From the NCBI RefSeq assembly GCF_000143415.4, contig NW_003314369.1, positions 502,006-566,005 on the forward strand: 64,000 bases of DNA. The letters run 5' to 3'. Source of the stretch: Selaginella moellendorffii. Its lineage: Eukaryota; Plantae; Lycopodiophyta. The translations under genes were made by a program, and so were the position numbers. This document shows positions 3,001 through 56,664 of this stretch, in pieces. Below the pieces are notes generated by a model, which was given only the letters and a program-made list of their open reading frames with translations, had not been told where the DNA came from and searched no databases. Each line of letters starts with the position of its first letter. Within the stretch, counting starts at the first letter, position 1.

Positions 3001-6000
3001 AGATCTTTCGTCCACCACAGCTCTCCATTCATTGACAGTTTCTGTGAGCTGATCGAGAGTCTCAGGTTTTCTTTTAAGTTGCTGCTTGTTCCTACAAAGC
3101 ACAAGCTCACTAATCTTGCGAAACAAGATATAATACTTACTTTTCCATGTACGCATAGATAGACTCCAACTCTGTTTTAGCTATCGTATTGAGCAACGTT
3201 CTGTGCACAAACGCAAAGTTTCAAAAAAAAAACAGTCCTTTCTGTGATTGCCAGTTTCCTTACGTAAATTTGGAGACCCAGGCCACGCAATGCGATATGA
3301 TCGCTTGTTTCAAAGGACCACAGTCAATACGCAAAAATCTCAAGTTCGTTATGCCTTCTTCACCCTGTTATATACTTGACATCACGTATCCAGTCAATCA
3401 GATTGTAAAAGTATACCTGCACATCTTCCTGCAGATCTCGATACTTTACAATGTCACTTTCAAAAGCAGAAAGTGGTTTCTTTGCTCGCTCGTACCTGCA
3501 TATGAGCCTTGTAAGGTTTCCATAAAGACGAGCTCAAACCTTCGTATAAACGCGTCCTTGTCTTGGTCCCAAATGCTTCTGTATTTCTTTTCCCAGTACT
3601 GAAGGTAGTGCTGAACTTTATCAGTTATTCCAATTACACCAGCGGTGATCATCATAAGGATCTCCTCTTGATCGGGACCGATGACCTGAAGAACACATTC
3701 TGTTAAGCTCAGAGAAATTAATGAAGAGACAAGGAACCTCATAAAAGCTAGGAAGCGCTTCTTGAAAGCTGGCTTGTTTCCTCAAACGAGGAACTACGGA
3801 AATGACAGTGACAAGTTCTCTAGCAACGATTTGTATCATCTCCAAAAGTTCCTGCAATTTCCATAGGCAACCGTCAATCTTCCAGTGACAAAGCCTAGTC
3901 TTAGCAGACGAACCTGCACCGATGGCATAAGCTTAACGCGCCCTGTTCCTTTATCCAGTACTCCAATGGCATTAAACATTGGCGTAGAGGACTTCGTATC
4001 AGCGTTCAGAGCGTTGGATAGTTCATTCAAGGATTTTGTCACACAATTTCTTAGTGAATTTTCCATGAAGACTTCCACCTGGTATTGTAAAACTGCAAAA
4101 CTGAATGCATCATTAAAAATAGAAGAGGTACCTTCTTGTTATAATCTTCCCACTTATTATGTACTTCAACCATATCGCTTGCACATTTCTTGTTAGAGAG
4201 AGCAATCGTATCTTTGATGCTGAGGTAAGCCTTCTCAAAACGGCCTCGCATGATACCGCGGTGCTCAACTTGCTTGGATGAAAACTCTGCCAAGTCATAT
4301 ATTCGTTTCTTGTCGATGCTGATTAACCACGAGTCACTGATCGAATTACAAATCTGATTGATCTTTCTCTTCGCCGCTCGAAAGAGCGCTGTTGATGCAA
4401 AGAGGACATGATTTTTAAAGCGAACCTCTTGTAGAAAATGCTCGAGCTCGTGTGCAGAAGAAGTCCACGTAAGCTAAAGAAAAAAATAAACATCAGATCG
4501 CACTCGAAGAATGAATGCAACTATACCCTATCCAAGGCTGGACTGATGCTGTTTCTAAGCCGAACAACGTGCTCAGCTATTAGTCCTCCTTCTTCAGTAT
4601 CCAAATTATCAATCATCTGCATGAAGAAGTTGCAATACGAGAAATTTCGAACCGCAACCGAACCTTATTACAGTCACGGATCACTATGAGAACATTAGCT
4701 CGAAGAACGCAAAGATCTTTATTATCTTCAATGAAGCTTGTAGCTACTTCCGGGACATCCCAGCCAAGGGATTTCCAGTAATGAACCTGCTTGCAGCAAG
4801 TTAACATGCCTCATAAGCAAATGGCCTTTGAAACTAACCTCCTGGTAGATAGCAAGCAGTTGAGGATCGAACTTTAGAACGTAAAATCCATCGCCACCAT
4901 CCTCCAGCAAGCTTCTTTCAAGCCTTTTTGGAAGAAGAGGATCAACACTGGCTGTCCATTCAGCATGCTGGTTCTGTACAAACTGCACGAGAAAAAAACA
5001 GGAACAACAACATCAATTTTCGAAAAGGATTTCTTCGGTCGCATAGTACCTGTTCGATCGAAGCCATTATTTGAGAAAATTGCGTGTGAATGTCAGCAGC
5101 ATCTGGAGTTTCGAGCAAATACGGCGCCGCATTGGTTAAAAGCATCATAGGCTTCTTAAGTCGACGTTGAAACTGCAAAGCCCAAGTAGCTCCACCGGCA
5201 AATCGCGGCAAAGCATAGTCCATCAAAGGACGTCTACGAAGTTGATCGAACTGCTTCTTCATAATCATTAACTCCATACTAAATGCTTGACATACCTGTA
5301 CTTTCAGATTAGTTTTTGCCTTGCAAATGGAAAACCTCCAAATTACCTGAGATCCCATTCTGTCAACGCACTTGCATATAGATTCCCTACACGCCAGTAA
5401 CTTAAATGCCTCCAGCAACTCTATGCTTTCCGGCAATGAAGACGAATGACGAAACGCGAGGGACATAATATTTTGCATCAGTACCTGTATAGAACACAAA
5501 GAAGGTAAACTCAGGTTTGAACTTGCATGGCTTACCTCAAGATCTTGAATCCCACTTTTAAACTTTGCAAAATCGTCGTGCCACCGTGTCACTCTCACGT
5601 CGAGCAAGTTATACGAAAGCGAGCGCAACCCCGAGACAAGTTTTTGAAATGTGTCCTGAAGCTCGAACATCGACTTGGTAATCTCTAAACCTCTTGTTCC
5701 TCCAAAGACTGGCAACTTCATTCGCGTTGAAAACTGTCTTTGCGCATCACAAACCTGCCACGGCCGAAGTTGGTTGAAACATAGTTGCAGACGTGCCATA
5801 CCTCCAGCATATCCCGACACCGTTGCAGGAACGCTTCGACTGCAGCGAAAACACTTCGATCGACAAGCTCGTTGTCGTCCTTGAATTCACCATCGTGTGC
5901 CGCTGCAGCCCTCATCATGGCTACGTACATGTGCTTCCACGATTCACAGGCTTGGACGCTCTCAAGAAGAGCCTTTTTGCACTTATCCACGTCCCCATCA

Positions 6001-10921: not shown

Positions 10922-12791
10922 ATGAAGGCTTTGCTCCTTTCGATCGCGGCGATCTTCTTCCTCTCGCATGGAGCGGCAGCTAGAATCGGCATCGGCGACG
11001 AAGAGCGGGTAGGGAATTTCAGAGATTTCTTCGGCAGCGCAGCGGCCGATCCAGCCGATGGAGCCGAGGCAGGGATTCTCGTCACGCTCTCCGAGATGGG
11101 GATCAGCTACGTCCGCGAGGTTCTCGTCGATAGCGTGCTCCAGGATTTGACGCCGCTCAATCTGCCGAATGTGAAGCGGAGGGTGGAGTGGCCGATTGGA
11201 ATTGTGGATGTGGAGCTCAAGAACATTGTCATTGTTTATGCCAACGTATCGTCATCGAATGTAGATCTCGGGAACACAGGGATCTGGTTCAATGCTTCAG
11301 GGGTCGAGACCAAAGTCTCGCTGGATTGGAAGTACACTTACACGGCATCACTGATTCCATTTCCCATCTCTGATAGTGGCACCGCGACTGCAAAGGTAAG
11401 AAAGGTTTTTGCTTGTTTCAGAGACTTCGACTTGATGAAAAAACCATTTTTTTTCTTAAAGGTGAACGATGGAGACGCATGGTTGCAAGCTACAATGCAA
11501 CAAAAGAATGGAACACTGTCCATTCAGGTGACCGAGTGTAACACCGACTTATCGTCACTAGATTTGGAGCTGCAAGGCGGACAGTCGTGGCTCTACCAAT
11601 GGTGAGTTTATTTTTTCTTGTCGAGGAGCTAGAGGGGAAGATCATTAACAAAGCTTCTTTGTTGCTTGCCAGGTTCGTTTATGCGTTCAAAGGACAAATA
11701 CAAAAATCTGTCGAGTCTGCGCTTACGACACAGGTTCTCGCCGCTGTGAGTCGGCTAAATCGTTTGCTGCTCAGCTTGCCCAGGCAGCTCCAAGTGGACA
11801 CCACTTCAGCCGTTGATGTCACGGTTGTCGACGATCCAATTCTCAACCAAAACTATATCAGCGTCGGGGTGATGGGGGAGTTTGTAGATATCGCTTCCCC
11901 CAGCGAAAGAAAGCACCCTCCAAAGAAGCTGCCAGCCGGATTATTATGCATTGATTCAGATGTGAAGATGATCACTGTGGCTCTTGGAGACTACGTTATT
12001 ACCTCCGCGTCGGACGTGTACTATAAAGTAAGTCTGCAACGCTTTTGTTTTGTTTTCTATTTTTCGTTAGTGCTCAATGGCTTTCACAGGCAGGACGATT
12101 AGAGAGGGTCGTGGATAGACTTCCACAGCAGTCCCTCCTCAATACTGCAAGTTGGAGATTTCTGATTCCGCAGCTGTATCGCAAGTTCCCAAACGATGAT
12201 ATGTTACTCAACCTTTCTGCTGCTTCTGCCCCCCGGGTTTCTTTTTCAAGGGATGGGATTCGTGCGACCACTACGGCTGACATGACAATAGAGGTGGTGG
12301 ACAACAACGAGATTATTCCAGTAGCTTGCATAAGTCTGGTACGATCATACAGAATTCTTCCACTTTGCTTTTTCTTTGCTTATTCTTGTACTTCACTTTA
12401 GGAAGTTACGCTACATGCTTTGGCCGAGATTGTTGGCACTAACATCACTGGCGAGGCCTCACTTTTGGACTTGAGCCTGGACCTCAAGTGGAGTACTATA
12501 GGCACTTTTCCAGTAAAGTTCGTCGAGGTAAGCGCCTACTGTTTCTTTCACATTATCTACCTAAAACGTTTGTTGCAACAGGTAGCGACGAGAACCATCC
12601 TCAAAGACGTGATTCTACCACTGGTGAACTACAATCTCAAGAAAGGTTTCCCGCTGCCCGTCATTCCAGCGATCGAGTTCCAAGAAGCAACCATTAGATA
12701 CGAAGACGATTTCCTGCTAATCTGTACAGACATCCGCTACACAGGCCTTCCGCTCCCTCCTCCCGTCGCTCCTTCGTGGTCCACCATCTAA
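10922..12791 (+). CDS. BPI/LBP family lipid-binding protein (plant LBR-like), secreted, multi-exon
   Basis: Signal peptide MKALLLSIAAIFFLSHGAAA. N-domain: GILVTLSEMGISYVREVL and LELQGGQSWLYQW. C-domain: LLNTASWRFLIPQLYRKFPNDDM, NLKKGFPLP and DDFLLICTDI. Stop TAA at 12789-12791. Confidence 0.9.
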
Positions 12792-19055: not shown

Positions 19056-20412
19056 TCATGTCCCTTCACTGCTCTTGTTGGTATCAGACGCTGTCTTTGG
19101 GTGACCATCCAAATCATCCGGACCCGGCTTGGTCCCGCTGGTTTCCTGCTGAAAGGCCTTAAACATCCCCCCTGTGGAGATCGTGTCCACCTTGTTGGAG
19201 CCCGTCGCAATGTCGGCCAGAAACGAGCTGCCGCGGCTGGCATCCCCTTGAGCATCAATCCTCAAAGTTTTCGGGGCCCATAAAGACCCCTCTGGCCGCT
19301 TGGCCGGTCCCGCCCCTGCCACTGACTTCTCGTCCCTCATGTGCTTCCCCAGCGCCGTGTGAACATTCTGAGCGAGAACCTTTGCGGCTGCTGTTGCCGC
19401 GGTCGCGGCCATGCTCCCCCAAGGACTGTTGCTCCAGCCAGCCCAGCCGGGGAGATTCCATGGGCCCGTGCCATTGAAAAAGGCGTAGGGCCAAGCCGTC
19501 GTACCACCGCCACCCTCCCTGCACTCCTGGGCCGGGTTGGACACCGATGACCCGCAAGTCGAGTCGTCTCTGGAATCGTTGCTGCCTTCACTTGTGCTGC
19601 TCTGCTGCTGCTGAGACTGCCTTGAAGGATCCTCTTCAGTGCTGCGTGAAGTCGCGAACCCCCGGATGAAACCAAAACTTCCGCCTCTCCCGGCGTCGCT
19701 TGCTCGGCTAACCTTGCAGCTCGAATCCTGCTGCGGGAGCTTCGTCGCCAGCTTTCTCTCGGAGCTCTGCCCGGGATTCTGCTGAGGAGGAAGATCACTC
19801 CCGGCAGCGGCAGCAGCACCACCACCACCACCACCACCATTTTCCAATCGCCCGTTCTTGTTCTTCCGGCGCCCGGCACCCACTGGAACGTTTCTCAGAG
19901 TGCCCCCGGCTGTCCAGTACCTCTGGCAGTTCTTGCAAAAGTGTCGAGGCTGGTTGACGTTGTAGTTGTTGAAGTAGCAAAATTTGGTGTCGAGGCTATG
20001 GCAGCGGGGGCAGGACACGGGCTTCTCAGGTCTCTTGAGTGGCCTGCCGCTCCTTTTGTCCTCTTGCTCCTCCGGCCTCCTTGGCACCTCCGCTACACCG
20101 CCGCCGCGGCCACCGTGATCCTCCTCCTCCTCCTCCCTTTTCAAGGCTTTGTCATCGTCGCTGCCGCTGGTGCTGGCGGAGAAGCTCGCGATCTCTTCCG
20201 CGGTATTCGATATCACCTGTGATGTTTGTTTGCTCGCTAAAACTCGTAGATTTCCAAAAAGCACTTACCTCGGACTTCGCCAATTCAGCGGGCGACGCGG
20301 CTTGATCCTCGTCCGCCGGTGTCACGGACAGCGAAATCTTCATACCAAACAGCTTCACGGCGTGGGAGAGCTCCCGCTTGGCCGCGCTCTGCCCGCTTTC
20401 TTTCACCGCCAT
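19056..20412 (-). CDS. Dof zinc-finger transcription factor, CDF (cycling Dof) type; one intron at about 20220-20268
   Basis: N-terminal VKLFGMKI (IKLFG motif). Dof domain [56 protein letters not shown]-terminal blocks [14 protein letters not shown] and GGMFKAFQ. Confidence 0.93.
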
Positions 20413-39940: not shown

Positions 39941-40446
39941 AAGTTTCCTCTTGCAAGGATCTCACCTCGCCAACAAAGTAGCTAGCATTACTATGCAGCT
40001 CTTCTCCTTGATCGAGGATTCCTCGACTGATAGAAGCATACAGGTTAAGTTCTAAACTTCCGCAAAGAAGATCATCTCATCAGTGGAGAGCTAGGAAGAA
40101 ATGAGAGAGGACATGAAGGATTTCATCTGCTTGTGGACAGATCATTGCTCCATGCGTTAGAGGCTGTATCTCATGGCGTCGTCTATGAGATAGAGGCCTC
40201 GTGAGCTTATGATTTTAAAATAGCAATATTTCTATCTTAAATTTCTAAAATTGGCTAATACTTTAAAAATATTTAATAAATATCTAAAAATATTAATTTT
40301 GAAGCACAAAAAATTATTATCATCTGATAAAAACTCTAAACTGCTATTATTACACATTCAAATGCTTAATATTATATTATTTACTTCTTGATATATTTTA
40401 AGTATTAGGATGCTAAATGTAAAGCATATATTCCCAGAAAGATATA

Positions 40447-41369
40447 TAAACTAATATATTTTGTCAATGAAAAGTTTGCCATCTTAGTCTCGACAGGGAA
40501 CTTGGAAAAGCAGCAAGAAGGAAATAAGACGCAGTAGTGGAGACGAATTTTTCAACGAATTTGATCTCTTTCCCAAGACAAAGTCTAGCAATTACCTACG
40601 CCAACCACGTATATAAAACACCCGATCTAAAATGAAATGAAACACACACTTCTCTTCTAAAGATCGTCAAGGTCCAACTATTTATTTGGATATTTGTCCT
40701 TTTCAGTGGCAATGAAGTCGATAGCCATGGCGCGTGGTGATGCATGAGTTCAATAATATATATTATATAAACTGTGAAAAAAACTAAAGATGTTGCCTTT
40801 ACTCATCTGGATTCACTCGTGTGTTGTTCTATGTCCCAGCATTATAGAAAAGAAAAGGAATTGACAAACTCGGAACGATTTCCTCGACTAACTTTCAAAG
40901 GACAAAGTGATGCCGCCCCAAGAGACGCCACAGCATTGTATGCTGCCTCCAGCTACAAATACGAGTGGCCTCACAGATCAAATCACTTCTCTCGAATATA
41001 CTCGTTGAACTTTTAGTTTTAGCAGCAAATCATGGAGAACCAAGGCTTGCTTGGTGTTGTTTTCGGTGCTTGCCATCTTTGTGCCGATGCTGGCCATGAG
41101 AGTGGACGTGGGAGGAATCGAACCGCGAGGATGGCGCTAGTATGGCGGCAGCTGCCACCGTAACTAGAAAGCTAGCTCCTCTCTGTGATCGTAAGTTTCC
41201 TCTCGGCAATTTTGAATTCAACTATGAAGAACAAGTTGAGGGAACACACTATGACCAACAAATCCAATTGCCCATGTACGCTTATTCGCCATTGACAAAT
41301 CAAAGCTCTATCTTGTCAGTCAAGAGAATTCCAGGAAAACGCCGGTAAAAGCAAACGAAATGATCGATG
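40447..41369 (+). repeat. Segmental duplication A, copy 1 (copy 2 at 44520-45420)
   Basis: Collinear high similarity from taaacta..gtcaatgaaa..gccatcttagtctcgac to ggtaaaagcaaa..aaatgatcgatg. Confidence 0.9.
41032..41167 (+). pseudogene. Pseudogene of the secreted Cys/Trp-rich peptide
   Basis: Homologous to 43727-43924, with a +1 C after codon 3, an in-frame TAG replacing Trp, and TATA changed to TACAAA. The corrected frame reads MENKACLVLFSVLAIFVPMLAMRVDVGGIEPRGWR*YGGSCHRN*. Confidence 0.8.
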
Positions 41370-43084
41370 AGAGGAATCACTACCACGCAGACGTACCGAT
41401 TGAAGCCTCTAGAACAGGCCGTAGACGATCTAGAGCGGCGGGCATCGTCGCTCGACGACGACGACTACGCGCAACTCCTCACAGCTTGCATCCAGGAAAG
41501 AGATTTGCGTCAAGGCGCCAGGCTCCACGCGCTCATCCTTGGCAGCAGCCACCACCAATCCAACAGGTACCTCGCAAATCTTCTCATCCAGCTCTATGGA
41601 AGGTGCGAGCGCGCGGATCGAGCATGGCAGGTGTTTATCAGCATCCACGAGCCCAACAGATTCTCCTGGAACTTGATGCTTGGCGCTTATGCCCAAAATG
41701 CGGATCTTGAGGAAGCAAAAGAGCTGTTTAAGAGATATTGTTGCATGGGTCCCTATTCTCACGGCTCATGCAAACCGTGGAAACTTGGAGGAATGCCAAG
41801 CATTGTTTGATCAGGTTCCAGAATGGGATGTCGTTTGCTGGAACTCGCTACTTACAGCATATGCCCATAACGGGCATATGGATTAGGCAAGCCAGGTCTT
41901 TGATGGAATGCTAGAACACAACATAGTTTCTTGGGCTGTTATGGTTACTGGGTATGCAAGAAAAGGCCCTGTTAACGACGCGCTAAATGTGTTTATGAGA
42001 ATCCCCGAAACCAACGAACTAGGATGGACTGTTCTTGTCACTACATATGCCCAGCTTGGGCATATTGAAAAAGCCAAGGAGCTTTTTAGTAAAATGCCAC
42101 ACCGCGACTTAATCTCGTGGAACGCAATGCTAGCGGCAACGGCCAGCCTGCAAGAAGCAAGGTCTCTGTTTGATGCCATGCCACAGAGGAACGTTGCATC
42201 GTGGTCGACAATGATCACCGCACTGGCGGAGAGAAACCAGCTCGAAGAAGCTCGCATTCTCTTCGATCGAGTTCCCTATCACGACGACGTGGTGTGGATT
42301 GCCATGATCTTGGCCTACTCCAACCACGGCCACCTCGAAGAAGCCATGAAGATGTTTGCACGGATGCCACAGCGCGATCTCGTCGCTTGGACGGCAACGG
42401 TGGCGGCAATTGCTTTGCACGGGAGTTTGATCGATGCCAGAGCCTTGTTCGACCAAATGCCACAGCACGATCGCGTCGCGTGGAACACGATGCTGGGAGC
42501 TTTACATCCAGAGCAATTGCCTCGTCCAAGCGCGGGAGCTCTTCGTGGCCATGCCGGTGAGAGACACATCGAGCTGGAACACGATCCTTGCCGCGAGCGC
42601 TGAAGGGGGGAATGTCTTGCACGCCGGGAAGATCTTCTCCACATTGCCTGAACGGAGCATTGTGTTGTGGAGCGCGATGTTTTTTGGCAGCATGGCGATG
42701 GAGGGCGAGACGAGAAACGAGATAAGTTTCCAGGGGATTTTCCTGACTTGCAATCACGGTGGGAAGCTCCCTGTGGCACTCGACTACTTTCGATCTATGG
42801 TGGCCGAGTACAGCATTTCTCCAAATGTGATTCACTTCCAGGCGATGGCAGATGTGCTGGGACGAGCCGGGCTGGTTGCCAAGGCCGAAGCTCTGCTGCT
42901 GGTGATGCCCTTCCAGCCGCATTTCCTCGTGTGGAAGAGCTTGATCAGCGCTTGCAAAGTTCATGGTAGTGGCAAGAATTGCAGCTCGTGCCGCAGAGAA
43001 ACTCTTGGAGATGAAACCAGGGGACTCTGGAGCTCTACGTGCTCATGCTCATGTCGAATCTGCAAAAGCAGCTGCGTCACATGA
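41367..43084 (+). pseudogene. PLS-class PPR gene with an E-type C-terminus, disrupted
   Basis: PPR motifs (YAQLLTAC, ANLLIQLYGRC, many FDxMPxRDxVSW repeats, MPFQPHFLVWKSLISACKVHG) are spread over four ORFs, with a TAG at 41884 and frameshifts. Confidence 0.85.
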
Positions 43085-43639
43085 GTCCATTTGGCCGGTT
43101 AACATTAAAGAGTCAACAAGTATAAACATTTAATTAATAGAATAACAGAAAATAATTATATGTAAATTAAATAAGAAAAACAATTTTAATGAATAAAATC
43201 TTGATAATTATTGATATCACTTTCATTAATCGTTGCAGATTGCTCCAAAAGATTGTCAAGAGCCTGCCAGTGAGAAGAGACAATGTAGCATTTACCACTT
43301 TGATTAAAGTTGCAGGTGACTGGAAGCAGCCGTACTGAGTCTGTGGTCGAGATGGAAGACAAAGTATTAGGTTCGTGTTTAGGATATTAGCATGGAAGTT
43401 CTATGGAACTTTGAATCAAACACTTGTAAAGTTTTGGCAAAGCTAGTAGAGGAATGCTAGAGTGACTTTGGAGATAAGGATTTGAAGGGTTGGAGAAGCA
43501 TAGGAAAAAGAAGAATTGGCAAACACGGAACCACTTTTACTGGACTAGCTCTCAAATATTCTTTCAGAGATAAGAAATAAGCGAAGCCGTCCCAAGACAA
43601 CTCTCCAGCGTCCATCTAACATTTTGTGCTGCCTCGAGC

Positions 43640-43646
43640 TATAAAG
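43640..43646 (+). promoter_or_regulatory. TATA box of the secreted peptide gene
   Basis: TATAAAG 87 nt upstream of ATG 43727. The same context is conserved at 44970 and mutated at about 40954. Confidence 0.6.
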
Positions 43647-43726
43647 ACGAGCCCCTCCTGCCTCACAGATCAAACCATTTCTCTCTAATATACAAGCTTA
43701 CTTGATCTTAGTCTGAGCAGCAAATC

Positions 43727-43924
43727 ATGGAGAACAAGGCTTTCTTGGTGATGTTTTTGGCGCTTGCCATGTTTGTGATGATGCTGGCCATGGGCGTGGA
43801 CGTGGGAGGAATCGCAAAGGCTGCTGCCCAGCGCTGCCAGTCGGGGTGGTATTGGTATGACAACAGTTGCCACCGTTGCCAGAGGGGTTGGGTCTGGCGC
43901 AACAATCGCTGCTGGCGCAACTGA
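43727..43924 (+). CDS. Small secreted Cys/Trp/Arg-rich peptide (65 aa) with two C-x10-C repeats
   Basis: MENKAFLVMFLALAMFVMMLAMGVDVGGIAKAAAQRCQSGWYWYDNSCHRCQRGWVWRNNRCWRN. It has a hydrophobic signal peptide, a TATA box, a good start context (aaatcATGG) and decayed paralogs nearby. Confidence 0.85.
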   Translation: MENKAFLVMFLALAMFVMMLAMGVDVGGIAKAAAQRCQSGWYWYDNSCHRCQRGWVWRNNRCWRN

Positions 43925-44214
43925 AACCTCCCGTTTCACGGGGTAAGCCCATGTTAAGAATCAACATCATAATTGCCTTTGATTTCATCATTCTGCAGTG
44001 CCAAGAAAGAATAAAGACACTGATAACGTGTTTTCTGATCGTGATGAGTTCCAGCAATAATAAATAAATTGTCCAGCTTGATATAAAAAGTCTGAATGTC
44101 TCTTGCTCCTCCTCTCTTCTCCGAATCCCTCGACTTCCAATCAATGCATCGCTGGATTGATCGATTGCTCGACTCGATTGGAGCGTCACAACCAGGCCCA
44201 GGCACACCCAGCTC

Positions 44215-44339
44215 ACCAAGGCGATGGCGCAGCGCTGCCAATGGATTTCGCTGCGTGCTATGCAATTGGTACGGGTATGACCAGTTGCCATCGATGCCAG
44301 CGAGGGTGGCGCTCGAATGGCAGCCGCTGCTGAAGAATC
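44215..44339 (+). pseudogene. Decayed paralog of the peptide's mature repeat region
   Basis: AQRCQ..NWYGYD..SCHRCQRGWRSNGSRC* read across frames; the final Trp codon is TGA. Confidence 0.7.
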
Positions 44340-44519
44340 GCCAAAGTTCGCTAGCCTGGCGCCTCGAAGAACCACGGGAGCGCAGTTTGAAATTTTCATG
44401 CCCCTGAGACTGTCAATGTGGTTTCTAGAAAGTTGGTTCACTTTTAATATCAAAAAAATTTAGAACGACTCAAATCTACATAGCTTTTGGACTAAAATTT
44501 ATTATTATATAATATTAAA

Positions 44520-45420
44520 TAAACTAATACATGTTTTTGTCAATGAAATGTTTGCCATCTTAGTCTCGACGTGGAACTTGGAAAAGCAACAAGAGGAAAT
44601 AAGATGCAGTAGTGGAGACAAAATTTTCAACGAATCTGATCGCTTTCCCAAGACAAAGTCCAGCAATTACATACACCAACCACGTCCCCTCTCTCGATCG
44701 AAAGTGAAATGAAACACTTCTAAAGATCGTGAAGATCCAGCAATTTATTTGGATGTTTGTCCTTTTCAGTGGCAGTGAAGTCTATAGCAATGGCACGTGG
44801 TGATGCATGAGTTCAATAATATATATTATATAAGCTGTGCCTTTACTCATATCAGCATTATAAAAAGGAAAAGGAATTGACAAACACGGAACGATTTCCT
44901 CGACTAACTTTCAAAGGACAAAGTGATGCCGCCCCAAGAGACGTTACAGCATTGTATGCTGACTCCAGCTATAAAGACGAGCGGCCTCACAGATCAAATC
45001 ACTTCTCTCGAATATACTCGTTGAACTCTTAGTTTTAGCAGCAAATCATGGAGAACCAAGGCTTGCTTGGTGTTGTTTTCGGTGCTTGCCATCTTTGTGC
45101 TGATGCTGGCCATGAGAGTGGACGTGGGAGGAATCGCACCTCGAGGATGGCGCTAGTATGGCGGCAGCTGCCACCGTAACTAGAAAGCTAGCTCCTCTCT
45201 GTGATCATAAGTTTCCTCTCGCCAATTTTGAATGCATAATTCAACTATGAAGAACAAGTTGAGGGAACACACTATGACCACCGTTTCCTTTGTACTGCAC
45301 AAATGCAATTGCCCCATGTACGCTTATTCGCCATTGACAAATCAAAGCTCTATCTTGTCAGTCGAGAGAGTTTACTGTATCCCAGGAAAATGCTGGTAAA
45401 AGCAAAGGAAATGATCGATG
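44520..45420 (+). repeat. Segmental duplication A, copy 2
   Basis: Collinear with 40447-41369. Confidence 0.9.
45048..45183 (+). pseudogene. Second pseudogene copy of the secreted peptide
   Basis: Same +1 frameshift and TAG as the 41032 copy; TATA retained at 44970. Confidence 0.8.
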
Positions 45421-46200
45421 CCAAAGGTTGCATGTGGTGAGATGGGTAGTAATATCACGTCCATGCCTAATAGTCTTGCTGTTTCCAGGACAAGTTTGGT
45501 CACATAAGACCTGTGGCCATCAACAATGCGAGTGTGGTGGTTGTATACGAACATCCATTAGGGATTGATTTCATAAAGTGTTCAAGCCAATAGATTTTAT
45601 ATCATTCAAGCTTTCTTACTGATGGTGAGTGTAACTCTTACTTTGCAATCTGCAATCCAATTTTGTATCCTCCACTTGCCTTTGAAGATATAGGATCCAG
45701 GTAGCAGCATTCACTGCCACAAGAACAATCATGTGTTCAGTGTTGTTTGGGACAATTCAGTAGCTGAAGCTGACACTTCGGGTGTCCAAAACTTTGACAC
45801 CTCTAAAACAATTGGCTCAGACACTAGTTTTGTCAGCATTCCAAATGTTATTTGGCTTGTAACTGCTTGGAACATAAGATGCATCAAGATTCTCATAGAA
45901 TCATGATGCAACTTCTTTGCTTAGGAACTTTGCACGTTGGAGCTCCAAGGCCTCCCCAAGCTTGCTACTGATCTCTGGGTGCCATTTCATGAAGCTACTG
46001 CTCCACTTTCTGCTCGGTTCTCTGTCTGTCCAGCTTAGTGCTGTAGATGCCTGGAAACAACAAGAAGAGAAGTTGGTTCTCTTTCTTTTATCTTTTACCT
46101 TTTCAGATTGGCTTTCACTGACAAGAGCTGCCTGACAATTTTTCTGCACAACAGGCTAAAAGTGGTTTAATTAAGACCTCAAAGGACTTATAGTGTACCT
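45421..46200 (-). mobile_element. Degenerate pogo/Fot1-like (HTH-CENPB + DDE_1) transposase, truncated at 45421
   Basis: SRKWSSSFMKWHPEISSKLGEALELQRAK (end of a CENPB-type HTH), NIWNADKT and RIVDGHRSYVTKLVLETARLLGMDVILLPISPHAT (DGHxSH..LPxH motif). Stops and frameshifts. Confidence 0.7.
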
Positions 46201-46636: not shown

Positions 46637-49600
46637 GATGGCACTTGCCATGTACCATATATCCACAAACAACACTACTGCCACCAACTATTGTTGCTTT
46701 GCTCAAATCCTTTATAGTGCCCACCGGTTACAACTCCACCATTTTGTGGAGCACGGAGCAAATCTATTCCCTGCCTCTGTTTTGAAGATCCCGAGCGTGG
46801 ATTTGCAGGTTCTCCATGCCTTGGTGCTTGCAAGCAGACCTTACCAGTTCATGTTTTGTGGCTTCTCTTGCCTTTCAAACGTTTCCTTTGGTGTAGAAAG
46901 GAGTGGCTTTCATTCAAGGAGCCTGCGGTTTAATCCCCAAAGACTTAGAAAGAAATGTCCAGGACACTGCATTAACTTTGACTTATCAAGGTGCGAACTT
47001 TTTCTGAATAGCATGGAACCAAGGTGAAGTTCCAGAGATCCAACCAAGAAAGCTCTTGTCTTAGTAAGCAAAGTGTGGAAGCGATGGACCAAGGATGAAG
47101 GCCTTTCTGAAGCAGAGAAGTGGTTTGCCAAAGTTCAAGCTTAACAATTTTAAGACTGATTCAGCCAACATTTCTACAAATAAATGCATCAATTTAGAAT
47201 GCTCTACTTGATTGCTAGACTTTTGATGGGAGATCCTAGACATTCATTTAATTTCAGAAAACTTCATCAAAATAAACCTACAAATCTCTTCAAAAGCCTT
47301 CATGGTTGTTTCAGCATGAGATGCAGTTCCTGCTGAAATCTCCACACAACCAATATCTGTCTTAGTTGGAGGTAATTTAGTGTTGGAGCGACTAAAACAC
47401 CAATATCCCTTTCTTGATGTTATTTCCTTCTTCTCTGAACTTGATGTTCTTATGATCGTTCCCAAAGGCATGGAGCTTGAAACCCATTCTTTACAATTTT
47501 GTACCACAAACATCCGAGAAGTACAAGAAAGATTCTGTAAAAATAAAATAATATATAAAAAAGAAAAAACATATGTTTTACCTTCACATATGAGCTTTGT
47601 CCAGCATCAGTGAAAGCAATGCATTTGAGACGTTGTAGCACCTCTAACTCTGTAAAGTTTATAATAAATATAAAATATATCAAGTAAATACTTAAAACCT
47701 CGATATTTTAGAAGCTCATAAGCATCATATCCACCACATGAATGTGCAATAATAGCAAGTTGTTTAGCTGGAAGTTTTTGACATATATTATCCCATACAG
47801 ATATAATATGTTCTCTCCGATTCTTAAAGTATGACTCCTATAATAAAAACATTAATAAGTAAAGGTAGAATAAGAAAACTTAAAATTGCATTACCGTTTT
47901 TAGAGAGGCATGATTTGGATTCAAAACTAATATTGCAATGTTCCTCTTGTGTGCCCACTCTAATAAAATATAAAGTTATATCTGACTAAAATACTAATTT
48001 TCTTAAAATTTACCAAGAAATGGCAAAACACTCCCAATCTTTAGTGAACCCTGTACCAAAATTTAAATTCAGTCTCAAATTGGAAACTTATAAAGAACTT
48101 ACATTAATACATAGCTTCCGAGCCCATTGCCCTGCACTGATAAAAACAAAACCAGAAATTAAATCCCTGTACTAAAATTAATTGAGTTAGAAAACTTACG
48201 CTACTTTTCCAGCTCCACAGCCAAGAATAACAAGCTCATTAGCTTTAACAGCATTCTTAGATAAGAAAACAAAGCACTGAAAAAGCACATGAGGTTTTAA
48301 AATCTCAAATTGAATCTAACCAATAAACCTTTTGTGAGGGTAGCTCCACTCTCTCCATACCATACTTCTAGAAATAAAACAGTTAGCACAATTTTTTTTT
48401 AACTTAACTAGTACCGTTTCCATAAGCTGATGCACAATAATCTCCAGAGCATTGCCTACACACTCATAATGAGATTGGCTTACAAACTGAAAACCAGCAG
48501 CAGTCGCTATATGTCGCAGTTCTAAGCTTTCTTCATCTAATCTATAGCCCAACTCTTCCAATCTCTCCATCAAAGCAAACCCTAACTAGGTTTTAAAATA
48601 ACATATACATATATTCCTTTTATCAAGGAAGAGCTCAGAATCACAAGACACTTGCATTGCACAGAGAATTGGACATATGCCAGTTGTTACTTGTTCTTCT
48701 TTGCTTGCCGCCATGGCTTCTACCTCAAGCTCTCAAGCTTGTCAAGCAGGAATCTCTTGATAAGCCTATATGGTCTTGAGAATGAAATTTACTTCGCGAA
48801 TGCTCTACTGGATGCGTTCTCGATTGCTTCCAATCCATGGTCGTAGTGGCTACTAAGAGCTTTTGCAAAGCATCGATGCTTTGGAGTGGGCGTGTTTGCA
48901 AGAGCCACAGTAGCTTAGCTTGGAATAAAAAGAGCGGGCTTATTTGAAATGCTCTTACTCTTAGGTCTAATCGAGAATGCGGGCGATTCATTCGATCGCG
49001 GTGGCTGGAGCTCCTGGAGATCGCGGCGGGCGCCGGCAATCTCCTGGCTATGGCGCTGCCACTGGCGCTGGATCATCGAGGTAGGAATTCTCGCTCCAGT
49101 TTCAGGGTTTTCAATCGCGTTTCTTTCGCAGATGGAGAACTCCCAAGAACAAGAGCGGCTCCAATGCTGGAATTCCGTCGATCTACGACGCGTTGCAGCA
49201 GGCGGGAGCGATTCCGGGCGTTGGTGTCGTGCTTGCGGCATTGACAGCGTGTAGAAACTCGCGAGACCTCCAAACAGGTAAGCGAGTCCATAGCTACGTT
49301 GCCGAGCGAACGAATTACTGTTCTTCAAACAGCGTGGTGGCGAACTCTGTGCTGGATATGTACGCAAAGTGTGGAAGCATGGAGGACGCGTTGCAAGCTT
49401 TCTCTGAGATGAAGCATCGGGACGTCGTTTCGTGGACTTCCATGATCTCGGGATATGCAAGGTGTGGAGATGGCGCTCTGGCTCTTAAGTTCTTCGCGCG
49501 CATGCAAGAAGAAGGCTGTGAGCCGGATCGTGTCACGGTCATCGCAGCAGTGAAGGCATGCTCTAGCTGCGCAGAGAAGGAAGAAGCTCGCGAGATACTA

Positions 49601-50182
49601 GGAAGAGCAGTGAAGATCAAATCGCTGGAACAGGGAAGAGCTCTTCATTCTCGAGTCGCCAGAGCAGGATTTGTCCGGGACCTTGCTGTGGCAAACTCGC
49701 TGGTGGATATGTACTCCAAGTGTGGGAGCATGGAAGATGCACAAAAGGTGTTTGAGAGCATGAGGCAGCGGGACGTGATTTCATGGACTTCGATCATTTC
49801 GGGTTATGCACAGGCTGGGGAAGCGGAGTTTGCTCTCAAGCTTTACTCGCGAATGCAAGACGAAGGCTGCGGTCCAGATCGCGTAACTCTCCTCGCTGCG
49901 CTCAAGGCTTGTGCTAGCTTGGCCGAAGGAGAGAAAGATGGTCCCTCGAGACAAAAGTGGCTGGAGCAGGGAAGGGCTATTCATTCCAAGGTCGTGGGAA
50001 GTGGAAACCAGTCGGCAAACTCTCTACTCGACTTCTACGCGAAGTGTGGGAGCATGGAAGACGCTTGCACTGTGTTTCAAGCTATGGGTCGTCACAGCTC
50101 AATCTCGTGGAAGTGCATGATCCTGGGATATGTCTACAACGGGGAGTTCGAGCAAGCTCTCGAGTTTTACAAGCGCATGCAA
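46637..50182 (+). repeat. Segmental duplication B, copy 1 (copy 2 at 52475-55581)
   Basis: Collinear from gatggc..catgtaccata to aagcgcatgcaa. Confidence 0.92.
47244..48570 (-). CDS. Arb2-domain / FAM172A (ARB2A)-like protein, about 9 exons, intact
   Basis: Spliced by eye: MERLEELGYRL..ELRHIAT..YECVGNAL; GKVAAGQWARKLCINGSLKIGSVLPFL; ILVLNPN; EHIISVWD..IIAHSCGG; IAFTDA; NCKEWVSSSMPL; EISAGTASHAETT; stop at 47244-47246. All introns are GT-AG and in frame. Confidence 0.85.
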
Positions 50183-50191
50183 CTTTTCTAG
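48977..50191 (+). pseudogene. Truncated PLS PPR copy (5' half of the 54358 gene)
   Basis: Same exon 1 and intron structure. It has a 12-bp deletion (DHFV) and stops right after RMQLF at the duplication breakpoint. Confidence 0.85.
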
Positions 50192-52474: not shown

Positions 52475-55400
52475 GATGGCGCTTATCATGTACCATACAT
52501 CCACAAACAACACTACTGCCACCAGCTATTGTTGCTTTGCTCAAATCCTTTATAATGCCCACTGGTTGCAACTCCGCCACCATTTTGCTCCACAAGATCA
52601 CACTCTATTCTCTGCCTTTGTCTTGAAGATCCCAAGCGTGGATTTGCAGGCTCTCCATTCTTTGATGCTTGCGAGCAGGCCTTACCAGTCCATGTTTTAG
52701 GCTTTTCTTGCTTTCAGAACGTTTCCTTTGGTGAAGAAGAAGAGTGGCTTTCATTCAAGGAGGCTGCGGTTTAATTCCAAAAGCCTTAGAAAGAAATGTT
52801 CAGGACACTGCATTAACTTTGACTTATCAAGGTGTGAGCGTTTTCTGAATGACATGGAACCAAGGTGAAGTTCCAGAATCCAACCAAGAAAGCTCTTGGT
52901 CTTAGTAAGCAAAGTGTGGAAGCTTACTTATAGATGGACCAAGGATGAAAGCCTTCCTGAAGCAGAAAAGTTGTTTGCCAAAGTTGTTACTGACATTCCT
53001 CAAGTTTAACAATTTTAAGACTGATTCAGCCAACATTTCTACAAACAAATGCATCAATTTAGAATGCTTTACCTGATTGTTAAAATTTTAATGGGGTGTC
53101 TAAGGCAGCTTTGTCCAGCATCAGTGAGAGCAATGCATTTGAGACGTTGTAGCACCTCTGACTCTGTAAAGTCTAGAATAGATATAAAATATATCAAGTA
53201 AATAACTAAAACCTCGATATTTTAGGAGCTTGTAAGCATCCACATGAATGTGCAATAATAGCAATTTGTTTAGCTGGAACTTTTTGACATACATTATCTA
53301 ATACAGATATAATATGTTCTCTCAAATTCTTAAAGTATGACAATAAAAACATTAATAAGTAAAGGTAGAATTAAAAAAAATTAAAATAATACTACCGTTT
53401 TTAGAGAGGCATGATTTGGATTCAAAACTAACATTGCAATGTTCCTCTTGTGTGCCACTCTAATAAAATATCAAGTTATATCTGATTAAAATACTAATTT
53501 TCTTTAAAATTTACCAAGAAATGGCAAAACACTCCCAATCTTTAGTGCACGCTGTACCACAAATTTAAATATAAGAAACTTACATTAATACATAGCTTTT
53601 GAGCCCTGCACTGATAATAACAAAACCAGAAATTAAATCCTTGTACTAAAACTAATTGAGTTAGAAAACGTACGCTACATTTCCAGCTCCACAGCCAAGA
53701 ATAACAAGCTCGCTAGCTTTAACAGCATTCTTAGGTAAGAAAAAAAAGCACTGAAGGACAAAACATTTTAAAAATATAAATTGAATCTAACCACTAGAAC
53801 CTTTTGTGAGGGTAACTCCATTCTCTCTATATCATGTAGAAATAAATCAGTCAGCATGTGAAATTCTTACCTAAGTAGTACCGTTTCCATAAGCTAATCT
53901 CCAGAGCATCGCTTACACACTCATAATGAGATTGGCTTACAAACTGAAAGCCAGCATCAGTCGCTGTATGTCGCAGTTCTAAGCTTTCTTCGTCTAATCT
54001 ATAGCCCAACTCTTCCAATCTCTCCATCAAAACATAACTTTAGGTTTAAAATTATATTCCTTTATCCAATCCATCCACGTTCTTAGGTTTTGCTTGCCGC
54101 CATGGCTTCTACCTCAAGCTTGTCAAACAGGTTACACGGTCTTGAGAATGAAATTTTCCTTGTGAATGCTCTACTGGATGCGTTCTCGATTGCTTCCAAT
54201 CCATGGTCGTAGTGGCTACTAAGAGCTTTTGCAAAGCATCGAGTGGACGTGTTTTTGCAAGAGCCACAGTAGCTTCGCTATGCCTGCTAATAACAGGAGA
54301 TTGGAATAAAAAGAGCGGGCTTATTTGAAATGCTCTTACTGTTAGGTCTAATCGACAATGCGGGCAATTCATTCGATCGCGGCAGCTGGAGCTCCTGGAG
54401 ATCGCGGCGGGCACCGGAAATCTCCTGGCTATGGCGCTGCCACTGGCGCCGGCGCTGGATCATCGAGGTAAGAATTCTCGCTCCAGTTTCAGGGTTTTCA
54501 ATCGCGTTTCTTTCGCAGGTGGAGAACTCCCAAGAAGAAGAGCGGCTCCAATGCTGGAATTCCGTCGATCTACGACGCGTTGCAGCAGGCGGGAGCGATT
54601 CCGGGCGTTGGTGTCGTGCTTGCGGCATTGACAGCGTGTAGAAACTCGCGAGACCTCCAAACAGGTAAGCGAGTCCATAGCTACGTTGCCGAGCGAACGA
54701 ATTACTGTTCTTCAAACAGCGTGGTGGCGAACTCTGTGCTGGATATGTACGCAAAGTGTGGAAGCATGGAGGACGCGTTGCAAGCTTTCTCTGAGATGAA
54801 GCATCGGGACGTCGTTTCGTGGACTTCCATGATCTCGGGATATGCAAGGTGTGGAGATGGCGCTCTGGCTCTTAAGTTCTTCGCGCGCATGCAAGAAGAA
54901 GGCTGTGAGCCGGATCGTGTCACGGTCATCGCAGCAGTGAAGGCATGCTCTAGCTGCGCAGAGAAGGAAGAAGCTCGCGAGATACTAGGAAGAGCAGTGA
55001 AGATCAAATCGCTGGAACAGGGAAGAGCTCTTCATTCTCGAGTCGCCAGAGCAGGATTTGTCCGGGACCTTGCTGTGGCAAACTCGCTGGTGGATATGTA
55101 CTCCAAGTGTGGGAGCATGGAAGATGCACAAAAGGTGTTTGAGAGCATGAGGCAGCGGGACGTGATTTCATGGACTTCGATCATTTCGGGTTATGCACAG
55201 GCTGGGGAAGCGGAGTTTGCTCTCAAGCTTTACTCGCGAATGCAAGACGAAGGCTGCGGTCCAGATCGCGTAACTCTCCTCGCTGCGCTCAAGGCTTGTG
55301 CTAGCTTGGCCGAAGGAGAGAAAGATGGTCCCTCGAGACAAAAGTGGCTGGAGCAGGGAAGGGTTATTCATTCCAAGGCCGTGGCAAGTGGAAACCAGTC

Positions 55401-55581
55401 GGATCACTTCGTGGCAAACTCTCTACTCGACTTCTACGCGAAGTGTGGGAGCATGGAAGACGCTTGCACTGTGTTTCAAGCTATGGGTCGTCACAGCTCA
55501 ATCTCGTGGAAGTGCATGATCCTGGGATATGTCCATAACGGGGAGTCCGAGCAAGCTCTCGAGTTTTACAAGCGCATGCAA
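52475..55581 (+). repeat. Segmental duplication B, copy 2
   Basis: Collinear with 46637-50182. Confidence 0.92.
53105..54027 (-). pseudogene. Arb2/FAM172A-like pseudogene
   Basis: Duplicate of 47244-48570 with deletions in GQW and HSCGG, other indels, and loss of the last coding exon. Confidence 0.85.
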
Positions 55582-56664
55582 TCAACAGGGTGTGTGGCGG
55601 ATCGTGTGACTTTACTGGCAACTTTGAAAGCTTGCTCTACCTTGACGGCGGCAGGGGCATCAGAAGAAGCACTGGGAACTGCTGAGAAAGAAAGGCTCGT
55701 AAAGTTCAGGCTCAAGTGTCTCGAAACAGGAGCACGCATCCATTCTCAAGCTGGAACGCTGGACCTTGCAGTGGCAAACTCTGTGATCGATCTCTACGCG
55801 AAGTGCGGTCGCATCACACTTGCTCGCAATCTCTTCGAAAGCCTTCCACAGAAGAACACCGTCTCATGGAACTGTATCATCATCGGGTATGCGGAGTGTG
55901 GGGAAGGCGCCGTGTCTTTGGAACTCTACAGACAGATGCGTCACACCTCAGGCTGTGCTCCAGACGCCGGTACTTTCGTGGCCGTTTTGAAAGCTTGCTC
56001 CAGCTTGGTGGCACTGGAATTCGGGAGGCAAATCCAGATGGAAGCCCGCAGTTTTGGACTAGAGAGAGATCCCATCGTCGCAAACGCGCTCGTTAGTTTC
56101 TTCGCGAAGTGTGGGAGCATGGCCGAGGCCGAGGAGGTATTTAGTTCCATTTTGAAGAAAGATTTAGTGACATGGAGCTCATTGATCGCAGGCTATAGCT
56201 GCCGAGGCGACGCAACTCGGGTGCTGGACCTTTTCGAGAGAATGGAGAAAGTTGGCGGTGTGAAGCCAGACGGTGTTACGCTCCTCTCCGTTCTCACTGC
56301 CTGTAGCCACGCCGGCCTGGTCGACAGAGCGAAGGACGAATTCAGAGCAATGCTCCGCAAGCATGGGATTGCTCCCACGATTCAACACTACACTTGCATG
56401 GTGGAGCTTCTCGGCCGCGCGAATCAACTCGACGAGGCAGTGAAATTGGTGAAAGGGATGAGCTGCAAGCCGGATGTTGTGATATGGAAGGCAGTGCTGG
56501 GAGCTTGCTGGAAGTGGAAGAACGTGGCGCTCGGGAGGCTTGCTTTCGAGTCCATCATGGAGCTCGACAATCAAAATGCCCCGGCTTACGTGCTCATGGC
56601 CAATCTTTATGCTGAGGCTGGGATGCTGGAAGAAGCCGCAAGGATGCGCCGAAGCTTAAGTTAA
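54358..56664 (+). CDS. PLS-class PPR protein with an E domain and no DYW; probable organellar RNA-editing factor
   Basis: Exon 1 (54358-54467, MRAIHSIAAAGAPG.., transit-peptide-like) and a 51-nt intron (54468-54518) lead in frame into the 694-aa ORF. P-L-S triplets (MYAKCGSMEDA, DVVSWTSMISGY, PDRVT..AC) and an E domain (PDVVIWKAVLGAC..AYVLMANLYA). Confidence 0.92.

Follow-up and report, generated by a model that had tools for sequence, protein, structure and literature searches.

Antimicrobial peptides that are cationic and rich in tryptophan and arginine, or that form β-hairpins stapled by disulfide bonds, include tachyplesin, protegrin, arenicin and lactoferricin, together with the Trp-rich domain of the puroindolines. 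The Ib-AMP peptides of Impatiens balsamina are basic, Trp/Arg-rich molecules of 20 residues with four cysteines and an N-terminal glutamine, and are excised from a multi-unit precursor. Among vascular plants the lycophytes form the sister lineage to all the rest, and their defence peptides are almost unknown. Here we analyse the gene for a small Cys/Trp/Arg-rich peptide, probably secreted, in the lycophyte (spikemoss) Selaginella moellendorffii. It lies in a stretch of 64,000 nucleotides of contig NW_003314369.1 (positions 502,006 to 566,005 of the forward strand), termed the window, to which all coordinates refer unless another locus is named. An earlier note, made from the sequence of the window alone, had proposed that the gene belongs to a new family of modular secreted peptides.

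The peptide resembles the β-hairpin antimicrobial peptides in being small, Trp/Arg-rich and charged at about +5, with predicted disulfide-closed hairpins, inferred secretion and high expression. However there is no sequence relation. Each of the known peptides is a single hairpin in which the cysteines are spaced differently, and none has two tandem C-x10-C units connected via C-x2-C. With the Ib-AMP peptides it shares plant origin, basicity, Trp/Arg-richness, four cysteines, a possible N-terminal Gln and a modular family. Yet the cysteines of the Ib-AMPs are arranged as CC-x8-C-x3-C rather than C-x10-C-x2-C-x10-C, and several peptides come from each precursor, whereas the spikemoss gene encodes one peptide with joined units. 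No similarity to Ib-AMP was found in any search.

The peptide gene is real, and is transcribed at a high level. The general kind of molecule that it encodes is known (i.e. a small secreted peptide of cationic, disulfide-stabilized hairpin modules), and the Cys pattern and the family are new. We consider the chance to be about even that it is a functional member of a multi-copy, Selaginella-specific family of secreted Cys-stabilized peptides.

The gene and its transcripts

The coding sequence was taken from a listing of open reading frames (ORFs). As in the earlier note, it comprises 65 codons and is preceded by a TATA box. The ATG is in a good context for initiation, with G at +4 and A at −3. 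The elements of the gene are as follows (UTR, untranslated region).

43640–43645, + strand: TATA box (TATAAA), about 30 nt 5′ of the first transcript contigs, of which the first piece begins at 43674
43672–43942, + strand: exon 1, with about 55 nt of 5′ UTR, the entire coding sequence and 18 nt of 3′ UTR; the 5′ end is approximate
43727–43924, + strand: coding sequence of the peptide, 65 codons plus TGA
43727–43795, + strand: signal-peptide-like part, residues 1–23 (n-region MENK, hydrophobic core of 18 residues, A-x-G)
43796–43828, + strand: residues 24–34, VDVGGIAKAAA, a conserved c-region or short propeptide, with a second candidate cleavage site A-x-A|Q at its end
43832–43873, + strand: hairpin unit 1, RCQSGWYWYDNSCH, predicted strands WYWY and SCHR, turn D-N
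43874–43915, + strand: hairpin unit 2, RCQRGWVWRNNRCW, predicted strands WVWR and RCWR, turn N-N
43943–43998, + strand: 3′ UTR intron of 56 nt with GT..AG ends, 18 nt past the stop codon, located from contig joints
43999–44080, + strand: exon 2 to the main 3′ end, with AATAAA at 44010 and 44059
44081–44400, + strand: minor read-through 3′ region holding a decayed copy; spliced contigs reach 44207 (run X2) and 44384 (X3), and X1 contigs cover 44049–44348

Parts of the stretch are contained in 20 public sequencing runs from seven studies, and the contigs of four runs (X1 to X4, each from a different study) were placed on 40400–45600. The runs were picked because the peptide gene is present in them, and their type is recorded as 'RNA? 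(a guess)'. Contigs of the four runs cover 43674–43925, so that the expression named in the earlier note as a check on its proposal is borne out in four studies, with a GT..AG splice in addition. Contigs without a single difference lie at 43741–43864 (X2), 43718–43794 and 43835–43894 (X3), and 43766–43925 (X4). The depth per contig is 1025–3499 in X2 and 178–1544 in X3, compared to 3–8 over the adjoining gene for a PPR protein and 0 in most intergenic bins. In three of the four runs the per-contig depth over the peptide gene is hundreds of times that over the PPR gene. Run X1 has 1119 contigs here at 90–100% identity, and there are therefore many expressed variants and a large family. Among the transcript variants no well-supported insertion or deletion (indel) falls within the coding part, while some are found in the UTR.

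Four contigs in X1 and one in X2 skip the 56 nt at 43943–43998, and loose ends in X3 fit the same junction; the GT..AG ends are obtained after shifting the cut by one base. Exon 1 is thus bounded by this joint at 43941/2, by contig pieces at 43674–43925 and by the start of depth in bin 43532–43705. The splice, the empty flanks and a thousand-fold contrast in depth show the sequenced material to be + strand RNA, and the GT..AG intron places the transcript on that strand. The summed depth in X1 drops about 50-fold from bin 43880–44053 to bin 44054–44227, the fall coming after about 44050–44080 and behind two AATAAA signals. The earlier note had described the gene as intronless. This holds for the coding sequence, which is uninterrupted, but not for the gene, since RNA-derived contigs skip the intron in the 3′ UTR. 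An antisense ORF of 242 codons with a TTG start (43725–44453, − strand) spans the whole peptide gene. It was taken as spurious, being contradicted by the + strand GT..AG intron.

The precursor and its predicted hairpins

The precursor consists of a polar start, an 18-residue hydrophobic core, an 11-residue Gly/Ala-rich stretch and a tail of 31 residues. The signal peptide was called on the basis of hydropathy and the −3/−1 rule. Hydropathy is 2.1–2.9 across residues 4–24, with the core at residues 5–22, and the rule is satisfied equally well after G23 and after A34. A helix is predicted at residues 2–23, and these properties fit the signal peptide proposed in the earlier note. The stretch of residues 24–34 is near-identical in a paralogue (P0002, GVDVGGIANAAAQ; see below) despite a differing hydrophobic core.

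A recount of the 31-residue tail agrees with all the numbers given in the earlier note (i.e. 4 Cys, 5 Trp, 6 Arg and 1 Asp, to which 2 Tyr can be added) and with the presence of two 14-residue repeats. These units are identical at 8 of 14 residues and at 25 of 42 bases. The four cysteines are spaced 10-2-10 (C-x10-C-x2-C-x10-C). The tail has a computed mass of 4105 Da, a pI of 9.7, a net charge of about +4.8 and a Trp content of 16%. Across the six reading frames of the window the pattern C-x2-G-W-x-W-x4-C is found at the peptide gene alone. With a predicted signal peptide, a small mature part, four cysteines and abundant spliced transcripts, the gene has the general character of one for a secreted plant Cys-rich peptide.

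The structure was predicted with AlphaFold2 from the single sequence, both for the precursor and for the 31-residue part. The precursor model has the helix at residues 2–23, a second short helix and two hairpins, with a predicted local distance difference test score (pLDDT) of 78.7. The model of the 31-residue part has two β-hairpins with strands 7–10/13–16 and 21–24/27–30 and a mean pLDDT of 85.2 (80.8–85.2 over five models). The charge of +4.8, pI of 9.7, five Trp, four Cys and two hairpins at a pLDDT of 85 are, in prediction, the features of the cationic β-hairpin antimicrobial class.

Neither Foldseek nor VIA-align gave a significant fold match for either model. The best Foldseek matches were the Cys-rich domains of mGluR5 and mGluR2, aligned over 31 residues at 1.5–1.8 Å with a template modelling (TM) score of 0.66–0.67 by query and an expectation value (E) of at least 1.8; EphA2, IGF1R, TNFR-type and EGF modules were also matched non-significantly. 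With VIA-align, the mGluR domain and six chitin-binding domains of CBM14 type reached Z values of 2.1–2.6, where by the tool's own note a Z near 2 is at chance level for a 31-residue model. The single-disulfide hairpin modules, joined by C-x2-C, of furin-like Cys-rich domains (in the EGF and insulin receptors), of ephrin receptors (GCC2_GCC3) and of mGluR/CaSR Cys-rich domains have the same C-x2-C-x2-G-aromatic-x6-C pattern. However, they lie in large receptors and lack both the Trp-richness and the positive charge of the peptide, and their disulfides are usually interlocked (1-3/2-4). No Pfam match to furin-like, ephrin-receptor-like or TNFR-type repeats was obtained, and with Foldseek E at 1.8 or above and VIA-align Z at 2.6 or below this is a likeness of pattern alone.

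The three best matches in a sequence search of the PDB were the N-terminal hairpins of C-type lectins (6a7t, 8w9j and 3ubu). The resemblance pointed out in the earlier note is therefore reproduced, but at E values of 0.34–6 it is not significant. Unit 1 matches the C0-C0′ hairpin of the long-form domains (C-P-x-G-W-x2-[FY]-x3-C-Y) position by position in C-x2-G-W-x2-Y-x3-C, whereas the remaining ~110 residues of the fold are absent and Pfam Lectin_C is not matched. A whole C-type lectin-like domain (115–130 residues, with a WIGL core and C1-C4/C2-C3 disulfides) is not present, the mature part being 31 residues. Taken together, the fold and PDB matches describe the unit as a common structural solution, i.e. 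a short aromatic hairpin that a disulfide closes and that is linked to the next via C-x2-C, with no family membership implied.

By analogy with prokaryotic units discussed below, there is most likely one disulfide bond per unit (1-2 and 3-4, each across C-x10-C). This pairing is favoured because the prokaryotic units (P0003, P0006 and loci L005–L007) hold two cysteines each and are separated by long Cys-free linkers.

From these properties a pathway can be proposed. The 65-residue precursor would be directed co-translationally to the endoplasmic reticulum and the secretory pathway by its N-terminal signal peptide, which would be cleaved after G23 or after A34, with the 11 residues between acting as c-region or short propeptide. 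Oxidative folding would then generate two short β-hairpins (WYWY-DN-SCHR and WVWR-NN-RCWR) and two disulfides, and a peptide of 31–42 residues, ~4–5 kDa and a net charge of about +5 would be released to the apoplast.

Relatives and possible roles

No described plant family of Cys-rich peptides in Pfam matches the peptide. The exact protein is absent from a collection of 15 billion proteins, and a word-index search with the precursor gave no candidate. Pfam-A (hmmscan, E up to 10) returned only DUF4215, below threshold (E 0.58; 10.9 bits where 27 are required), and none of the Pfam models for defensin, thionin, hevein, snakin, lipid-transfer protein (LTP), RALF or Bowman-Birk inhibitor was matched. 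The lack of fit to known plant Cys-rich families claimed in the earlier note is hence confirmed by Pfam. The four cysteines at 10-2-10 also differ from the 6–12 cysteines with family-specific spacing of plant defensins, thionins, hevein-type peptides, snakin/GASA, non-specific LTPs, RALF and Bowman-Birk inhibitors. NCBIfam gave nothing for the peptide, Rfam gave nothing on the whole window, and feature searches of the ESM Atlas with the precursor and with residues 35–65 gave no usable match, the language-model recognition value for the peptide being low. No description was found in the literature on Selaginella Cys-rich, Trp-rich or antimicrobial peptides, or on the motif strings. A survey of Cys motifs in 1267 transcriptomes names the Selaginellaceae solely for a cyclotide-like match, and for Selaginella a review of plant peptides made on the ribosome and modified after translation (RiPPs) covers burpitides and Bowman-Birk inhibitors alone.

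An exhaustive HMMER (phmmer) search of 1.84 billion representative proteins gave six matches with E ≤0.001. Two of these (P0001 and P0004) were rejected as relatives, being low-complexity repeat artefacts. As for the proposed new family, no described plant family in Pfam is matched, but relatives do exist, namely a pectinesterase gene model and a prokaryotic or phage hairpin module.

The former is the sole annotated plant relative. P0002 is RefSeq XP_024531936.1 of S. moellendorffii, a 'putative pectinesterase 11' of 353 residues that is 60% identical to the precursor over residues 10–54. Its first 52 residues comprise a paralogous signal peptide, GVDVGGIA.AAAQ, one C-x10-C unit and the beginning of the next, with the Cys, Gly and Trp positions retained. 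Past C-P-K-G, however, it departs from the peptide, continuing with a poly-Asp linker and then a pectinesterase domain (PF01095, E 4e-59). We note that this domain looks incomplete, the best Pfam stretch being profile positions 99–297, and that three cysteines of the module are kept. The protein may be a real fusion of hairpin and enzyme or a mis-joined gene model; in either case the small hairpin peptides themselves are unannotated. A very abundantly transcribed peptide family is missing from the gene sets of S. moellendorffii, save as the N-terminus of this pectinesterase model, and annotation-based expression atlases, proteomics searches and comparative studies therefore overlook it.

The second relative is an unnamed module, E-C-x3-G-[WFY]-Y-W-Y-[DGN]-x2-C-H, which occurs in surface proteins that are prokaryotic or phage-like (P0005/P0007/P0009, P0006, P0003/P0008 and the proteins of L005–L007). 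The phmmer E values are 4e-5 for P0005 and 2e-4 for P0006. P0005 is identical to the plant peptide at 14 of 19 residues without a gap, including GWYWYDN, the C-H-R-C junction and the G-x-V-W of unit 2. The local scores for P0005 and P0006 are 109–110 against shuffle means of 27–29 (z 12–14), and none of 2000 composition-preserving shuffles reached them. The score of 109 with P0005 (shuffles 27 ± 6) exceeds that of 70 with the plant paralogue P0002.

P0005, P0007 and P0009 are metagenomic proteins of 83–85 residues with a C-terminal membrane anchor and a two-unit layout, encoded on contigs of tightly packed, small, same-strand genes that look prokaryotic or viral. P0006, also metagenomic, has 581 residues with Ig-like domains, and P0003/P0008 come from a bacterial metagenome-assembled genome (MAG) and have a FISUMP domain. 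The units in all these proteins are of the type E-C-x3-G-[WF]-Y-W-Y-[DN]-x2-C-H. A DNA pattern for G-W-Y-W-Y-D-x2-C-H was found at three loci, all in one proteobacterial MAG. Neither Pfam nor NCBIfam has a model covering E-C-x3-G-W-Y-W-Y-D-x2-C-H, and the significant likeness flags a mini-domain that is absent from domain databases. A search of viral and GTDB genome contigs for the P0005 family gave pattern matches but no relative.

Some further properties of these loci were observed. On L002 (1–13268, Logan SRR16071516) and L001 the genes for P0005 and P0009 lie within runs of ~25 small same-strand genes, nearly all without a Pfam match; weak matches on these contigs are to Big_3_5, the transglutaminase core and DUF2341. 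An arrangement of this kind points to a virus, or else to an archaeon or bacterium with a small genome. In MAG JAHIVH01 (Proteobacteria) the matches at L005 5848–5877, L006 7756–7785 and L007 4617–4646 fall in paralogous ORFs with three tandem E-C-x3-G-[WY]-Y-W-Y-x3-C-[HQ] units each, flanked by an N-terminal region on one side and by a conserved C-terminal one on the other. Two of the ORFs are ~640 residues long and the third, cut by the end of the locus, is 304. The proteins look like phage tail fibres or adhesins.

The microbial module resembles the plant peptide in its tandem units, and P0005, P0007 and P0009 share its two-unit layout. It differs in a C-C spacing of 11–12 rather than 10, in units that are acidic rather than basic, and in being part of membrane-anchored or large multidomain proteins (Ig-like, FISUMP, tail-fibre-like) rather than free peptides. 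Judged from the alignment, ~20 residues are too few to tell common descent or transfer from convergence, and we regard homology of the plant double hairpin to the module as possible but as the lesser likelihood. A more far-reaching history seems rather improbable, in which the module entered the Selaginella lineage through horizontal transfer or as a mini-domain of ancient origin, acquired the signal peptide of a plant, exchanged its acidic character for a strongly basic one and, by amplification, became one of the plant's most abundantly expressed families of secreted peptides. If this were so, the peptide would represent a structurally new class among plant defence peptides, and its microbial origin could be traced.

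The role that we favour, by analogy with the cationic antimicrobial peptides and with a confidence slightly short of even, is that of a constitutive cationic defence peptide. The arginines would bind anionic microbial envelopes, and exposed Trp and Tyr would insert at the membrane interface. The abundance of the mRNA, the turnover of copy number and the decay of neighbouring copies fit a defence product required stoichiometrically. Several points count against it. Translation, cleavage, disulfide formation and secretion are all inferred, and for the signal peptide hydropathy and the −3/−1 rule were the sole criteria. In the AlphaFold2 model, made from one sequence, the two cysteines of a unit are not placed opposite one another on its strands, and the register allows 1-3/2-4 pairing. 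The contig depths are rough, the runs were chosen via the peptide gene itself, and identical paralogues elsewhere could supply some of the reads. Lastly, the pectinesterase-fused relative and the weak CBM14 fold matches point to wall or glycan binding rather than to attack on membranes. In that alternative, which is a doubtful but substantial candidate, aromatic faces (W/W and Y/Y ladders) and Arg would bind de-esterified pectin of the plant's own wall, or the chitin or glucan of an invader, so that the peptide would be an abundant lectin-like or wall-modifying component. The joining of signal peptide and one hairpin to a pectinesterase domain through a poly-Asp linker in XP_024531936.1 would accord with this, although that model may be mis-joined, having three module cysteines and an incomplete enzyme domain. 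Six of the ten VIA-align matches are of CBM14/peritrophin type (Der f 23, Der p 23, Blo t 12, Avr4 twice and the CBM14 of chitotriosidase; Z 2.1–2.6, root-mean-square deviation 1.2–1.9 Å), and the metagenomic P0005 itself has a sub-threshold CBM_14 match (E 0.0096). The structural and sequence matches are however all below significance. The best PDB sequence matches are to lectin hairpins, but the C-type lectin hairpin is not a sugar-binding site. High expression would suit a stoichiometric wall component.

Many plant Cys-rich peptides of similar size are ligands, and the peptide is likewise small, predicted to be secreted and disulfide-stabilized, in a lineage-specific and rapidly turning-over family. 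A secreted ligand of a receptor kinase, like the RALF, EPF or LURE-type peptides, is nevertheless quite unlikely. In three studies the transcripts are hundreds of times as abundant as those of neighbouring genes, which a ligand would not usually be, Pfam gives no similarity to known ligand families, and strong positive charge with 16% Trp is typical of peptides that bind membranes or polymers. Very unlikely, in our view, is an abundant transcript whose short ORF gives no stable product (i.e. a non-coding RNA or a decaying young gene), the Cys/Trp pattern having no present function. The family is absent from annotations, many copies are pseudogenes, the ESM Atlas value is low, and support for the ORF is at the level of nucleic acid and not of protein. 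On the other hand the reading frame is undamaged and begins in a good context, and the same Cys, Gly and Trp positions recur in both units, in the diverged paralogue P0002 and in the module of unrelated organisms, to which the similarity is significant. The lack of well-supported indels in the coding part, with some in the UTR, and the near-silence of the nearby dead copies also argue for a translated product.

Tandem Trp hairpins of 14 residues with 10-2-10 cysteines are short enough for chemical synthesis. If active, the peptide would provide a new modular template among β-hairpin antimicrobial and glycan-binding peptides.

Decayed copies and neighbouring genes

The earlier note had described three decayed relatives of the gene. 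All three were found by tblastn with the precursor, at 41042–41161 (E 4e-10), 45058–45177 (E 2e-11) and 44283–44336 (E 2e-5). The copies and the duplicated segments are as follows.

41032–41180, + strand: pseudogene copy, with an extra base after codon 3, an internal deletion and a stop; TATA box mutated to TACAAA
44213–44336, + strand: decayed copy of the peptide-coding part, frameshifted and without promoter or signal peptide, ending SCHRCQRGWRSNGSRC and then a stop codon
45048–45180, + strand: pseudogene copy, with lesions as in 41032–41180
40443–41369, + strand: duplicated block A, pseudogene plus flanks, pairing with 44516–45420
44516–45420, + strand: duplicated block B, pairing with 40443–41369

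The 41-kb and 45-kb copies have in common the additional base past codon 3, loss of the first-Cys stretch and an in-frame stop (PRGWR*YGGSCHR, where the asterisk is the stop). Blocks A and B are 84% identical over 965 columns. Since the two pseudogenes share their lesions and sit in one duplicated block, an already dead copy was duplicated along with its flanks, and it was not two copies that decayed separately. The idea of a locally duplicating and decaying family is therefore sustained, in that dead copies flank the gene and two of them lie inside a duplicated block. Both pseudogenes are near-silent; no contig lies on bin 40922–41095 and the neighbouring bins have depths of 0–26, while the 45-kb copy has a depth of ~2–12. 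The 44213–44336 copy was considered as a possible intact allele elsewhere, but a variant from run X3, rebuilt from its listed differences, is broken too.

The PPR gene that adjoins the peptide gene is of PLS type (41367–43084, + strand) and is split over three frames, with ORFs at 41367–41810, 41908–42603 and 42434–43084. It is weakly transcribed, and is probably a pseudogene or affected by assembly frameshifts. In the contigs on it there are several gaps of 1 base and clustered C>T differences (41967–41983), for which paralogues are the simplest explanation. Downstream, the PPR ORFs at 49193–50191 and 54580–56664 (+ strand) are identical over their first 60 residues, and short tblastn matches recur at an offset of ~5.4–5.5 kb (47892/53393, 49335/54722 and 49465/54852). 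The repeated PPR stretches indicate that a further, larger segment has been duplicated downstream of the peptide gene.

Elsewhere in the window, a Dof zinc-finger gene at 19056–20264 (− strand) is 100% identical to SELMODRAFT_448037 of S. moellendorffii, by which the window is identified as part of that genome. A fragment of the N-terminal part of a dynein heavy chain lies at 4960–5820 (− strand) and an LBP/BPI/CETP-like ORF at 10922–11605 (+ strand).

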